Below are positions 12,898 to 39,645 of a stretch of DNA of 64,000 bases, in pieces (within the stretch, counting starts at the first letter, position 1; each line of letters starts with the position of its first letter). This DNA is from Octopus sinensis (taxonomy: Eukaryota), in the NCBI RefSeq assembly GCF_006345805.1, contig NC_043017.1:3968001-4032000 (forward strand). The letters run 5' to 3'. A program made the translations under genes and the position numbers. The notes under the pieces are model-generated. The model was not told the origin of the DNA, made no database searches, and saw only the letters and a list, made by a program, of their open reading frames with translations.

Positions 12898-13336
12898 CTG
12901 CAAATAGTAAGTTAAACAAAACTAAATAAAATGGACGTTAGAAAGCTACTATAGGTTTCAAATTTTGGCACAAGGCCAGGAATTTCGGGAAAGTGGGCGT
13001 AAGTCGATTACAACGACCTTAGTGCTCAGCTGGTGCTTTTTTAGAGACCACAAACGGATGAAAGGCAAATCGACTTCGGCGGAATTTGATCAAAGACTTA
13101 GATGACAACAGATTTACTATCAGGATCCGAGCCACTGACACTGTGGTTTGTAGTCTACCAACTCAGTCAGATAATTGCAATTGATCACTTGAAAAGAAGT
13201 GATTCTCTAATAATGATTGCGAAAGTGAAGCCATCTGATTCAAGGAAGCCTTAAACAAGAAAATAACCAAAACCGTTATGGCAATTTTCCTGCAAAGGAA
13301 ATAACAGGAAATGGAAAAAAATAAAAGCAACATTAC

Positions 13337-13432
13337 GGCCTTATGGAAATCCTTTTTCATATCAAGTTCGTCTTTCAGCTCCTCGACCTGGTTAGTTAAC
13401 TCGACATTTCGAGTATTTTTTTCCTTTAGTTT
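13337..13432 (-). CDS. IF-A exon 3 (coil 1B end)
   Basis: 96 nt, same length as IF-B exon 3; KLKEKNTRNVELTNQVEELKDELDMKKDFHKA; AG / GTAATG. Confidence 0.85.
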
Positions 13433-14809
13433 CTACAGAAGGAAAAAACAAATATTTTCGTCAATGTTTCTTATAAAACATGCATTCAATAAGCTTTTAT
13501 AATTCTTCCTGGATGGCAGATAAAGTACAAAAAAACAATAAGCAAGGCGAAATCGGTACGAACAGAATCTGTTTTCCGTCGTCTCACTCACACTATTACA
13601 AGCAGTTTCTGCAAAACTTTAATAACCGGCGTTTTAGAATCAAGCGACATTATTTGCTGAATAACTAATAACGATGACATAGTTCGCAATGCGTTATTCT
13701 TTACAGCTGTTCCGGGTCCGAAAACCATCTAGGGTCTCGACACAAGTATAGCGATAGATCAGGTTTCTGGTATTTGTTTAACTTCCTCCCCTCTGTAGTA
13801 AGGGCTGCATAAAAACTTATATATACCGAAATTGTCATCTGTAGCTTCATAACGGATGAGGAGAGCACCGAACTGAGTCATGGACCGTTGCCTGACTGCG
13901 GAACGGAACGAAGGCAAGTAAGGTAGTACTGATTCATAGAAGTCTCTGTCTGTCTGAAGGTAGTTTTCTATTTGATGTCGTCACACTTACGGTTGAACAT
14001 CTGTATTCTGAGAGATGTCGAGCTTCAATGACATAATAACCCAAAGCTCACTCCAGTTCCCGGGCCACATCAAGTTCAACCATCCCCCGGAGTACCTCAC
14101 CAGTGAGGTTGCGGCTGGAGGAGACCGAGGAAAGTTAGGCCGGCAGCACCAGGTTCAAAGGGGAACGGATGCCAAGATCACTGAATTTCCTAGACGGTTT
14201 CGCCTTTTACCAGTGGGTTTGGTAGACGGAAACTGAAAGAAGCCCGTCGTATATAGGTATATATATATATGTGTATGTGTGCGTTTGTTTGTGTGTCTGT
14301 GTTTGTCCCCCCAAACTTGGCTTGACAACCGATGCTGGTGTGTTTACGTCCCCGTAACTTAGCGGTTCGGCAAAAGGGATCGAAAGAATAAGTAGTATGC
14401 TTCCAAAGAATAAGTCCTGGGATCGATTTGCTCGGCTAAAGGCGGTGCTCCAGCATGGCCACAGTCAAATGACTGAAACAAGTAAAAGAGAGAGTAAAAG
14501 AGTATTCATTGGAGTTATTTTTTCTTATTTCTCTCTGTTTATACAGCGTAACTCAAAGACCATGCGCCTCCCCCAAAGTACACACATATTCACACACGCA
14601 TTTATATGTATGTATGTATGTATGTATGTATGTATGTATGTATGTATGTATGTGTGTACGTATGTACGTATGTACGTTTATATGTATATCTGTATGTATG
14701 CATGTGTACGATGAATGTGTGTCCGTTTGTGTGTGTGTGAGTGTATGTTGGTGAGAAAAAGAGAGAGAGTCTAAGAGAGAGATTATGATTCCAAAGTTTT
14801 ATAACGTAC

Positions 14810-14939
14810 CTCTCTAAGATTGTTACATCTGTTCTTCCACTCTTCAAGTTCACTTTCCATCCCGCTGCTGTTGCTTGCTTCATTGCAGCGGGAAACTTCA
14901 TTCTTTAATTCATTGTTCTGCGTTTCCATTTTTAGCAAT
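14810..14939 (-). CDS. IF-A exon 2 (coil 1B)
   Basis: tttttctgtcAG acceptor and GTACGT donor, both as in IF-B exon 2; 130 nt, phase 2->0; LLKMETQNNELKNEVSRC...WKNRCNNLRE. Confidence 0.8.
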
Positions 14940-16457
14940 CTGACAGAAAAATAGTTTTTCTAAGGAATATTTATTTATCCAAGGTAGGGATTTTGGGAAC
15001 TGGCAGACACTGTGATACTGAAGCATAGTTTTATGTTTTATTAAAATAGTACCACACGTTATGACAAAATTATACCAAACGACCAGCAAAACGGCCATTG
15101 TTTCTTATTCGTTTTTGTTTTTTGTAACTTTGTTCTGTACATAGGAAAATTAACTTTACACAGATTTGTTACTTTGAGAAAGAGGGGTAAATATTATCTC
15201 ACCTTTTCACTCTACTTGTACCTTTCATTGGAGCTTTTGGACTGAATGTATGTAAAGAAAGCTATATATCGGTGAGTCACCGAATAGATACACAAATGGC
15301 GATAGACCGAGCGAGATAAGGAGTCCATATATGGTTGCATGTACGACAAGAAATAGTGGCAAAGTACATCTATAAAAAACAGAAAACAATGACTCGGTGA
15401 CGGATGGAGTGTACGCTGCCTCAGCCGTGAGTTAGGGCTTAACAGATAATTGCAAATGAGCGGACACCAGCAGGGATTTATGTTTATAACCAGGATACAA
15501 AGACAATATCCAAGTTTAGATTTATGCTTGTATGGAGTTAAGATGTCTTGCAAACAACTTGCACATGCAAGTGCTACCAGTCAAAAGCTCCGTATACCGG
15601 AAGCCAGCAAGTGTATGGGGTCATCAGGAGAGAATGCATGCCGTTTCGGGGCCTACCTCTCGACGGCATCAATGCGCACCGACCCCCCTCACTGATATGA
15701 GGCCCCACTTGCTAGATCAGCTGGTTATGAAGAACTCAATATACTTCTAGCCATCGCTAATTGTCTCTTTTTAACCAAATCCAGTGGCTAGCCTTCTCCA
15801 CTGTAGATTGGATATCAGTCATGGTGGTATTGACTTTTCCATGAGTTAGGCCTAACGATAACAACAGTCGTCTCACGCTGTGTCCTACAAACTCTCTACA
15901 TCCGACTTCGATAGGAAAATGTTCCGCTTTCCAGTTGTTAATAAATAAAACTCCCTACAGTTTATGACTGCTTATAATTTGAAATGCCAATTTGAGCTGC
16001 GTTTACGCGGATTATATTAACCTCGCATTTGCTTAATCACGAGGAGATCGGAACTGATCACTAGTACTAGAAATGTAACTGTTTCGGAAATTAGTAACTT
16101 TTTTAATTTTAAAGTGTTCACTTAAACCCTTGACAACGGTTGACGCAAATATGCGATCACACTTTTGCTTGCTTACCCGCGGTTCACGTAAATATACGAT
16201 GTAGAGCTGTCCTACATCTATCACGGACTTTTTTAGCGGCTGACGTATGTTTACGTTCGCTATCGTGTACTTTATCTCTTGAGGTGCGCGCACTCGCCGT
16301 CCCGTGCATTATCTTAGCTATTTAAGGTTACGTTCAAGTCATGAGAGTAGCGGTAGACCAATGGCATGCGGATACTTTACATGCATAATACCGTGTTTTG
16401 AGTCGTACCACGCACAAGCTATTTTCTGAACTTGAGCAGAATAACTCGTGCATATCA

Positions 16458-16844
16458 TCTCTCTATATATAAACGCCAGTTTGTGTGTCTGTGTGTCTGT
16501 CAGGTTGTACCCTCACCCTGACCACGGCTTTCAACCGATTCTGATAAAACTTGGCACACACATAGCCCAATGTCATAATTCAAAACTAACGCAGCGAAAA
16601 TTTTGAAAAGTTCCCCCAGTTCTGAAAAAGATCGATAAATTCGACATGGGGTCGAGAATCAGAAACACAAGCCACAGACTGTCTAGGGGACGCAACTCGA
16701 CCTTTTTAACTCGCAAAAAAAATTTACCATCATTTTTTTTCCATTTTTTTGCTATTTTTTTGCTATTTTTTGGCTATAACTCTCTAAAAATGCTTTATAG
16801 TTATTTCCCTTACAAACCCGAGCAACGCCGGGCGATACTGCTAG
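16458..16844 (+). mobile_element. Non-autonomous Helitron
   Basis: 5' A|TCTCTCTATATATAAA; 3' CCCG-agcaacgc-CGGG hairpin then CTAG|T; last ~60 nt shared with 39938-40450. Confidence 0.75.
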
Positions 16845-37955: not shown

Positions 37956-38120
37956 CTCGTCTGCATGTCGACGTTGCAAATCAGCAATGGCTGTTTGCAA
38001 CCTAGCCTCATATTCGGCACTTAAAGCAGCAACTTTATTTCCAGCATCGGATGCATTTTCTTGCTGAAGATTGCACTGCTTCCTTAGTTTTGCTATCAGT
38101 GCTTCATATTCTTTGATCTC
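37956..38120 (-). CDS. IF-B exon 4 (linker 12 / coil 2 start)
   Basis: tatttgtAG / GTAAAG; 165 nt; EIKEYEALIAKL...EYEARLQTAIADLQRRHADE. Confidence 0.85.
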
Positions 38121-38611
38121 CTACAAATAGTAATTAAAGCAACACAATAAGTAAGATGCAGGTTAGGAAATAAATATTAGTTTTTATTGAGCCCGTTTCA
38201 TATATTTAGAACATTATGCTGATGAGAACGAAAAATAATTGGTGACAGTATATTGCTGTTTTATATCCTTTTATTGGATATATAATATTACGAAGCAAGG
38301 TGGAAGAAAGTATGTACACGAAGCACTATTACTACTACAACTACTACAGGAGGCTCAACGGCCTATATCAACGGCTCACAGGAAACTCCTTACCAACCTG
38401 AACTGCCAATCGCTCACGGTTCTTTGTTTTATAACAATGAGTCAGTCCACCTTTTAGTCATTTGAGGGGTGGTCGAACTCGTTTCCCGTCTCACTTTTTT
38501 AGAAGTCTCTCCTTTTGAGAATTGAACTCCGCTTAGGAGTGTTTCCGTTATTTTCCGTTTTCTGTTGCCAGAACGTAGTTTCAAATTGTTTGGGTGTTGG
38601 TACCTCAAAGT

Positions 38612-38952
38612 GAAGGCGCATGGCTCAGTGGTTAGAGCGTCGAGCTTACGATCGTGAGGTTGTGAGCTCGAATCCCGGACCGGGCTGCGTGTTGTGTTCT
38701 TGAGCAAGGCGCTTTATTTCACGTTGCTCCAGTTCACTCAGCTGGAGAAATGAGTTGCGACGTCACAGGTGCCAAGCTGTATCGGCCCCTTTGTCTTTCC
38801 CTTGGATAACACTGGTGGCGTGGAGAGGGGAGACCGGTGTGCATGGGCGACTGCTGGTCTTCCATAAACAACCTTGCCCGGACTTGTGTCTAGGAGGGTA
38901 ACTTTCTAGGTGCAATCCCATGGTCATTCATGACCGAAGGGGGTCTTTACCC
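38612..38952 (+). mobile_element. SINE4 with 11-bp TSD
   Basis: TSD ggtacctcaaa at 38599-38609 and 38953-38963. Confidence 0.88.
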
Positions 38953-39549
38953 GGTACCTCAAATGCTTCTACCGAGCAAAAATCTGTGAAATTTTTTCGC
39001 AACAAAAATAATCTTCTGCTAATATCAGGGAACGTGAGGCATGAACCACCACCTTCATGTTTCCATCTTTATATTTATGTAGCATTACTGCTCCTATACC
39101 GTTGTCAGAAACGTCAAAAGCTACAAAATCTCCGCTGCGGGATCGAAGTGTGCTAACGACAAATCAGATATTTTTTTTTTTATTCCGTCAAACGCCTTCT
39201 GACAATTTTCCGACCGAATTCCATTTCACATCTTTTTTCGACAGATTATTCAATGGAACCCTTAACTTATTAATATTTGGAATATGATTTTGATAATAAT
39301 TTTTCAATCCTAAAAATGCTTGTTTCTGTATCACGGTTCGATCCACAGTCACTGTGGTTGATAGATAAATGTAATCGATCACTTGAGAAGCAGTGATTTT
39401 TTAAATTATGATTGTGTAAGTGAAGCAATCTAATTCAAGAAAGCCTAAAATCGCCGTGTAGGATTTAAAAAAAGAAATAACTAAAAACTTCATGGCAATT
39501 ATCCTGCAAGAGAATAACAAGAAAAGGAGACAAATAAAGGCAACATTAC

Positions 39550-39645
39550 AGCTTTATGGAGATCCAAATTGAAATCAAGTTCGTCTTCCAGTGCATCGTT
39601 ACGCTTATCGGACTCCAATCTTTGAATAGTTTCGGTTTCTAATTC
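39550..39645 (-). CDS. IF-B exon 3 (coil 1B end)
   Basis: gtctttccAG / GTAATG; 96 nt; ELETETIQRLESDKRNDALEDELDFNLDLHKA matches the IF consensus L-x-E-E-L-x-F region. Confidence 0.88.

Follow-up and report, generated by a model that had tools for sequence, protein, structure and literature searches.

A stretch of 64,000 nucleotides (nt) of the Octopus sinensis genome (contig NC_043017.1, positions 3,968,001 to 4,032,000; in the following called the window) contains three intermediate-filament (IF) genes on the minus strand, C (partial), B and A, and octopus IF proteins are the best protein matches to the window. The three genes belong to a cluster of five, with the minus-strand order C-B-A-Z-Y, of which Z and Y are situated downstream of A, outside the window. 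We found that the rod exons of gene A have changed about twofold faster than its introns, whereas its tail exons have changed at the background rate, and that this acceleration is limited to the A lineage. On this lineage coding divergence exceeds intron divergence: 35.8% of the rod sites but 16.3% of the non-coding sites were changed in A only, and the relative rate of A to B is 114:42. At the same time the rod of A was shortened in frame, and it retained its open reading frame (ORF) and its coiled-coil character. IF rods are textbook length- and sequence-constrained coiled coils. As the favoured explanation, with a probability of roughly 0.55, we propose that the A rod was adaptively remodelled after duplication; selection is likely but not proven.

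Exon and intron divergence in gene A

Gene A shares the exon–intron organisation of its family: its eleven exons have the boundaries and phases of those of gene B, and the intron flanks of the two genes align. Exons 1–7 of our model of A are identical to the NCBI model P0070 ('intermediate filament protein A-like'), and our model of B (11 exons, 552 amino acids), built exon by exon, is identical to the NCBI O. sinensis protein P0071 ('70 kDa neurofilament protein-like'). These matches place the window on O. sinensis chromosome CM016879.1. Judged from its sequence, A arose from the B-type '70 kDa neurofilament-like' IF genes by an old tandem duplication which predates the split between O. sinensis and Octopus bimaculoides. 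The third sequence used for comparison, Ob1, is the compact O. bimaculoides orthologue of B (merged locus L002 + L003). It aligns with B nearly from end to end at 83–92% identity, introns included.

In a preliminary description of the window it had been claimed that the rod exons of A are more diverged from those of B than are the flanking introns, and that the LTD tail is better kept. The underlying counts could be reproduced for exon 3 (60/96 nt identical between A and B, 62.5%; 11/32 amino acids), for LTD exon 10 (27/38 amino acids) and for a block in intron 6 (92/114, 80.7%); a block in intron 3 given as about 80% identical was found to be 84% identical (63/75). Both blocks are present at the same intron position in Z and in Ob1 and consequently represent ancestral intron sequence, not transposons. 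Over the whole rod (exons 1–6), the identity between A and B is 56.5% for nucleotides and 32% for amino acids, compared with 75.6% and 64% for LTD exons 8–10.

BLAST alignments of A with B, Z and Ob1 span the introns and end inside rod exons 2, 4, 5 and 6. The intron alignments between A and Ob1 form blocks of up to 740 bp with 68–76% identity, are found all along the gene and stop between a few and some tens of nucleotides from the borders of these four exons. With A and B projected onto Ob1, we counted the sites at which only A differs (A-unique sites). They make up 16.3% of all non-coding positions (4,521 sites), with 15.9% from the upstream region to intron 5 (1,335 sites) and 16.4% from intron 6 to the 3' flank (3,186 sites). 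In the codon alignment of the rod exons 35.8% of 975 sites are A-unique, distributed as 37.8%, 32.6% and 36.9% over codon positions 1, 2 and 3, respectively (325 sites each), and in the tail exons 19.0% of 426 sites. For rod exons versus non-coding sequence this corresponds to an odds ratio of 2.87 (p=2e-39). Exon 3 alone has 32/96 A-unique sites (p=3e-5). Exons 4 and 5 together reach 34.2%, compared with 13.9% in the intron between them (p=6e-10); this intron figure is based on the 524 of 915 Ob1 sites where A and B both align, A alone aligning over 95%.

Ob1 introns 4, 8, 9 and 10 are covered by A alignments over 71–95% of their length, at 71–76% identity, which leaves little room for an ascertainment bias. 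The contrast was also found with fixed flanks of 150 nt that had not been chosen for alignability, using one nucleotide MAFFT alignment of flank, exon and flank per exon. Here 34.6% of the rod exon sites were A-unique versus 20.4% in the flanks (p=2e-15), and five of the six rod exons lay above their own flanks. The tail exons, with 17.6%, were not above theirs (21.9%). The claim that the rod exons of A are more diverged than the introns around them, and the tail better kept, is therefore borne out with strong statistical support. Two further comparisons were discarded: global alignment in 100-nt windows with lenient gap costs is uninformative, as random sequence already reaches 62% identity, and a five-way MAFFT alignment of 200-nt flanks was dropped for rates, transposon insertions having led to a B–Ob1 value of 0.30 versus about 0.11 in clean alignments.

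We considered two alternatives in which the introns, not the rod exons, would be the unusual part. First, the introns could be unusually conserved and the aligned blocks could be constrained elements, namely splicing enhancers, intronic RNAs or alternative exons. The 5' part of intron 3 is in line with this, having 10% A-unique sites (of 167) versus 16% for non-coding sequence overall; in both A and B it contains two short hairpins, ATCACTT..AAGTGAT and CCACAG..CTGTGG, as well as a pyrimidine tract that ends with CAG 46 nt into the intron. However, when the window was searched for intronic RNAs with Rfam, nothing matched, and introns 4, 8, 9 and 10 align over most of their length at the even identity given above. 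Moreover, non-coding divergence does not differ between the surroundings of the rod exons, the tail half and the 3' flank, and the unselected 150-nt flanks show the same contrast. Independently constrained intron blocks, which the preliminary description had named as a possible refutation, are thus not supported, and we regard this explanation as very unlikely.

Second, the rod exons could be older than the introns. Introns and tail would then have been homogenised from B-type neighbours, with selection rejecting conversion tracts that reached into the rod exons, a mechanism documented for the red/green opsins (PMC3924837). Gene conversion is indeed active in the cluster. Between B and Z, a tract of 6.4 kb that reaches from late intron 2 to mid intron 6 is 94.6–98.5% identical, introns included, while identity outside the tract is 69–80%; by its sequence this tract is a recent gene conversion or segmental homogenisation. 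A stretch of 300 bp around exon 7 of A, probably a short conversion tract, is 92% identical to Z against 70–74% in its surroundings, and the background for both tracts together is 70–78%. In addition, the dS of the rod (about 0.8 with NG86) is larger than the intron distance.

Nevertheless, the introns of A are about equidistant from those of B, Z, Y and Ob1 (~68–78%) and nearer to Ob1 than to B of the same species: A and Ob1 agree against B at 5.6% of the sites, A and B against Ob1 at 2.9%. This is the reverse of the opsin-type signature. Nor would a series of random tracts be expected to leave either a uniform intron divergence or alignment breaks 3–20 nt from the ends of rod exons 2, 4, 5 and 6. 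At codons for an amino acid common to A and B, four-fold degenerate sites differ in 7/27 cases (26%) in the rod and in 9/42 (21%) in the tail, and the A–B introns differ at about 23%. The rod sites are consequently at intron level, so that the rod exons do not look older than the introns and there is no sign of a raised local mutation rate. As to a donor for exon-only conversion, no protein nearer to the A rod than the B-type proteins, at 37–40%, was found in a database of 5.8 billion sequences, nor does A stand nearer to Y (p=0.47) than to B (0.44). We consider it unlikely that homogenised introns account for the contrast.

Lineage, reading frame and selection on the A rod

In an amino-acid relative-rate test with Y (P0073) as outgroup, 114 changes were unique to A and 42 to B. 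With the orthologue of C as outgroup the numbers were 79 and 35, and with three other molluscan IF outgroups 55/27, 56/15 and 51/18, respectively. The same test was balanced for B and Ob1. The acceleration lies on the A lineage only. That the A rod is simply old is ruled out by these tests, since they are independent of age. In amino acids the A rod is 32% identical to that of B, which is less than the 37% found for the anciently diverged orthologue of C (P0004) in a search with the B rod as query, though the introns of A still align with those of B. In the preliminary description the restriction to the A lineage had gone unnoticed, as had the frame problem in the LTD exons of A and the replacement of its tail in the NCBI model, both described below. 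Its premise that the rod is the conserved part of an IF protein fails in this subfamily: the orthologues B and Ob1 are 85% identical in the tail and 79% in the rod (amino acids). The inverted conservation of rod and tail is a trait of the subfamily, which is extreme in A; the subfamily as a whole evolves fast, with a dN/dS of 0.44–0.65 for the B–Ob1 rod.

The rod of A comprises 298 residues and departs from the fixed length of the family, B and Ob1 having 347. All of the 49 missing residues are due to in-frame deletions, and all five exon length differences between A and B are multiples of three. The total shortening of the rod exons by 49 codons corresponds to seven heptads, which could be chance (about 1 in 7). 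Of the single deletions (19, 6, 10 and 14 codons), most do not correspond to whole heptads, so that A cannot keep in register with B-type rods over its length. At the start of coil 1A the sequence KEKKEMSELNSKLA is kept. At the end of coil 2B, QIAHYRKLLDVGEKK takes the place of EIAAYRKLLEGEEGR (family motif EIAAYRKLLEGEE), and a YRKLL remnant is present. The A rod contains no proline and shows a significant 3.5-residue hydrophobic (heptad) periodicity (z=4.7 versus 8.8 in B). It matches the Pfam family Filament (PF00038) with 28.5 bits and E=1.6e-6, below the curated cut-off of 40, compared with 104.8 bits for B and 87.7 bits for Y; on sequence evidence the homology of A to this family is real, though it stays under the gathering score.

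The low Filament score, together with the frame defect in LTD exon 9 and an NCBI model that borrows the tail of another gene, could point to a decaying pseudogene with non-functional rod exons. A pseudogene, however, cannot outpace its own introns. Neither a stop codon nor a frameshift was found in the 330 rod codons, whereas random substitutions placed on the B rod at the observed density produced a mean of 16 stops, and 0/20,000 simulations were stop-free. All insertions and deletions are in frame, the heptad periodicity is kept, and every splice site of the A model is AG/GT, the only weak one being an alternative exon-8 donor proposed below. Decay of the whole gene is hardly conceivable, and for the rod a pseudogene is excluded; only the tail carries a defect, of 1 nt.

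According to the explanation favoured here, the A rod would have been freed after duplication from staying in register with B-type partners. It would then have been remodelled under selection to a shorter coiled coil, with amino acids replaced at or above the neutral rate. With 298 residues such a rod would no longer be able to pair in standard register with B-type rods, and the A protein would self-assemble, or modify rather than extend B-type filaments. A more far-reaching version would have the whole A rod rebuilt under sustained positive selection (omega >1) and resized by exactly those seven heptads, giving rise to a new, non-co-assembling class of octopus filaments, a counterpart of the lens beaded-filament proteins, maybe in the skin epithelium. 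We think this version rather doubtful.

Several results weigh against adaptive remodelling. The pairwise dN/dS of A is not clearly above 1 (NG86 0.62–0.77, YN00 0.80–1.15; overall 0.6–1.3 by method), with a rod dN of about 0.55–0.95 and a dS of about 0.45–1.0. Maximum-likelihood estimates are unstable and range from 1.0 to 6.5 depending on the comparison and the exon set. By the dN/dS criterion of the preliminary description, positive selection is thus not demonstrated, dS being inflated and unstable. Furthermore, third codon positions have just as great an excess of A-unique sites as the other two positions, an equality that simple protein-level selection does not predict; misalignment around the deletions could contribute partly to it. 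Unalignable columns amount to 18% in the rod exons versus 7% in the flanks. Between B and Ob1 the four-fold sites differ by 17% (29/168) versus about 10% for the introns, so a neutral rate taken from the introns may be too low, by a factor of up to about 1.7. The difference points either to a mild constraint on the introns or to faster mutation at silent exon sites, and this bears on any intron-calibrated rate test at this locus. Finally, the LTD exons of A itself carry a frame defect.

Most of these points are shared by the main rival explanation, relaxed constraint. Here the rod would need only to stay some coiled coil, omega would be about 1, and the excess would come from misalignment or mutation near the deletions and from slow introns. 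The pairwise dN/dS values, the equal divergence at the three codon positions, the unalignable columns and the four-fold excess between B and Ob1 all agree with it, and so does the weak constraint on the subfamily overall that is seen in the B–Ob1 rod. On the other hand, exon 3 has no length change and well aligned flanks, yet 33% of its sites are A-unique versus 16–22% in the flanks. The fraction of transitions among the changes is 0.42 in the rod and 0.43 in the cleanly aligned tail exons, which argues against mainly random mismatches in the rod. Even a neutral rate raised to 1.7 x 16.3% = 28% remains under the observed 35.8%. Relaxed constraint is a possible explanation, which we hold with less confidence than adaptive remodelling.

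Aligned rod codons that differ at two or three positions make up 42%, compared with 14% expected at the intron rate, which fits repeated replacement in the same codons and also some misalignment near the deletions. A mutational bias was considered and rejected: the third-position composition is unchanged, and the 43 CpGs in the 1,208 rod-exon nucleotides of B are too few for an excess of 20 points. Among the causes that the preliminary description had offered, intron constraint found no support in view of the uniform divergence, nor did gene conversion, the introns of A being nearer to Ob1; positive selection is the best one remaining, and with a pairwise dN/dS of 0.6–1.3 it is unproven.

The tail of A, the neighbouring genes and their annotation

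The positions of the exons, conversion tracts and repeats are given in Table 1. Exon 9 of A is 1 nt short relative to that of B. Use of the strong donor of exon 8 leads to a stop four codons into exon 9, and the frame across exons 8 and 9 is kept only if splicing uses a weak donor situated 4 nt further downstream. In the NCBI model P0070 the LTD exons of A are omitted, and exon 7 is followed by those of Z, at a distance of about 30 kb (L001 56093-58056; 87–100% identical). P0070 seems to be a chimera of A with the tail of the next gene; alternatively, A may have lost its own tail. With Pfam LTD (PF00932) no match for A was obtained at E<=0.01, B itself reaching merely 22.7 bits. A and Z share an exon 7 of 89 nt, whereas exon 7 of B has 86 nt. 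If the exon-7 donor is left unused (5880-5895 in A, 31680-31713 in B), both genes read on for about 13–14 codons until they reach a stop, which has the same position in both (...AS followed by the stop). Such a read-through would give a short tail-less product, and its conservation may merely reflect a conserved intron flank.

Table 1. Exons, aligned intron parts, conversion tracts and repeats in the window (positions of the window; L001 is the locus containing gene Z)
Feature	Position	Strand	Remarks
Gene A, exons 1–7	5896-18857	-	
A exon 1	18508-18857	-	ATG at 18857; head and start of coil 1A/1B; 350 nt vs 422 in B; 24 codons fewer
A exon 2	14810-14939	-	coil 1B; 130 nt vs 187 in B; 19 codons fewer
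A exon 3	13337-13432	-	96 nt, length equal to B exon 3
A intron 3, 5' part	13169-13336	-	aligns to B 39363-39549, Z and Ob1
A exon 4	12751-12897	-	147 nt vs 165 in B; 6 codons fewer
A intron 4	10006-12750	-	95% of Ob1 intron 4 is matched by 12520-12750 and 10006-10727, 71-76%
A exon 5	9919-10005	-	87 nt vs 117 in B; 10 codons fewer
A exon 6	7657-7835	-	179 nt vs 221 in B; 14 codons fewer
A intron-6 block	6771-7012	-	aligned to B 32654-32908, 74.8%; includes 6807-6920
A exon 7	5896-5984	-	tail start; inside the A–Z tract
A–Z tract	5746-6042		matches L001 about 53477-53776
A LTD exons 8–11	3305/3309-3397, 2241-2350, 1205-1318, 305-331	-	
Gene B	22904-48676	-	
B exons 1–6	48255-48676, 42759-42945, 39550-39645, 37956-38120, 35458-35574, 34684-34904	-	
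B exons 7–11	31714-31799, 26586-26689, 25152-25262, 24178-24291, 22904-22939	-	
B–Z tract	33476-39859	-	matches L001 about 46224-51940; contains exons 3–6
Gene C, partial	56829-63843	-	orthologue of O. bimaculoides 60-kDa neurofilament protein P0004
C, coil 2B end	63622-63843	-	
C, NF60-type terminal exon	61627-61758	-	closes with a stop
C, LTD exons	about 60016-60144, 57579-57689, 56829-56939	-	
SINE-like repeats	8436-8598, 35079-35331, 46806-47258, 49092-49641, 54247-54847, 56573-56719		
Young repeat	20870-21209, 38611-38952		96% identical
Young repeat	33674-34055, 44507-44889, 61299-61602		first matches the others at 96-97%
Retrotransposon remnant	38972-39163		B intron 3

In the partial gene C the NF60-type terminal exon is closed by a stop, yet LTD exons are situated further downstream. 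From this arrangement it would seem that the gene has alternative 3' ends, so that isoforms with an LTD and others without a tail could be formed. The squid neurofilament gene is said to have alternative 3' ends of this kind.

Gene Z is the orthologue of O. vulgaris P0072, and Y (locus L004, downstream of Z) corresponds to P0073, 'ifa-1-like'. Exon 1 of Z (L001 about 41864) shows a change of reading frame in the O. sinensis assembly, the O. vulgaris orthologue being intact; either the assembly contains an indel here or Z has recently become a pseudogene. In Y the end-of-rod motif is likewise degenerate, MEVAAMLAQLKDVD, and exon 7 is long and encodes GPQTEGESAP repeats; the motifs LE(F/Y)QRD and NGKSHTH are common to Y and A. 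The introns of Y align to those of A and Ob1 at 66–78%, from which it follows that the cluster expanded at about one time or was partly homogenised. The B- and Y-type proteins of the cluster are found in skin epithelium, so that the B/Z/Y type occurs outside neurons as well.

Ob1 is annotated as three genes (257, 192 and 155 amino acids, the first reading through into intron 3) within the merged locus 10001-25373. Its 11 exons join to a single clean ORF of 558 amino acids with canonical splice sites. No orthologues of A are annotated in O. vulgaris or O. bimaculoides, and in the O. bimaculoides locus no A-like exon was found as far as 3.7 kb downstream of Ob1, where the locus sequence ends.

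A family of repeats resembling short interspersed elements (SINEs), about 180 bp in length, is represented by single copies in intron 5 of both A and B, while the region between B and C has short tandem arrays of it; two further sets of young repeats are listed in Table 1. The middle 1.8 kb of intron 4 of A is A-specific repeat or insert sequence. Intron 3 of B contains an ORF fragment with reverse-transcriptase RNase H-like domains (Pfam RT_RNaseH_2, E=1.3e-5), and this retrotransposon remnant explains part of the size difference of intron 3 between A (439 bp) and B (1,429 bp).

Comparison with known systems

A recent paralogue whose rod changed faster than its introns and was resized, and which is still a coiled coil, offers a natural experiment on the features that assembly requires of a rod, and A bears on the question of how new filament systems arise. 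Within 100 kb the locus combines three modes of paralogue evolution, namely homogenisation (B–Z), background drift (introns and LTD exons) and acceleration (A rod). Its compactness consequently makes it suitable for testing methods by which selection and gene conversion are told apart. Likely annotation errors can be flagged as well: the A model as a chimera with the tail of the next gene, and the O. bimaculoides orthologue of B as split into three models.

With the canonical protostome IFs, that is, molluscan NF70/NF60 and the 'retrograde protein of 51 kDa' with their lamin-like rod and LTD tail, A shares the exon plan of B, the heptad rod and the start of coil 1A. It differs from them in the length of its rod, in a Filament score below the Pfam cut-off and in its low rod identity to B, 32%.

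The beaded-filament proteins of the vertebrate lens, filensin and phakinin, are likewise IF members with a shortened, atypical rod and a degenerate end-of-rod motif, the filensin rod having 279 residues (PMC2119801). These proteins are of unrelated origin, diverged anciently and belong to the lens, whereas the acceleration of A is recent and measurable against its introns. The likeness suggests what a resized IF rod can become, namely a separate assembly system.

Red and green opsin genes resemble the present cluster in that peaks of exon divergence lie between more similar introns, in tandem genes with demonstrable conversion. In the model of Teshima and Innan the introns are homogenised by gene conversion while selection keeps the exon differences (PMC3924837). 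Between opsin paralogues of one species the introns are more alike than between orthologues; those of A are nearer to the gene of another species, and their divergence is uniform and old. A does not pass the defining test of the opsin type.

A can also be compared with duplicated venom genes, namely those for crotaline PLA2, for other snake venom families and for the Conus toxins, which are also tandem duplicates with coding exons diverging faster than the neutral expectation. In crotaline PLA2 genes, the introns are reportedly more alike than the protein-coding exons. For the habu genome an accelerated evolution of venom gene copies with KA/KS > 1 has been described, with reference to earlier work on PLA2 and Conus (PMC6062510). 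Venom proteins are secreted, take part in an arms race and show a KA/KS clearly above 1, whereas A encodes a cytoskeletal coiled coil with a dN/dS of about 1 and a shortened domain. A matches the venom-type pattern without a clear dN/dS above 1. This single gene is a further example of the known accelerated evolution of duplicates, unusual in that an IF rod is the domain affected.

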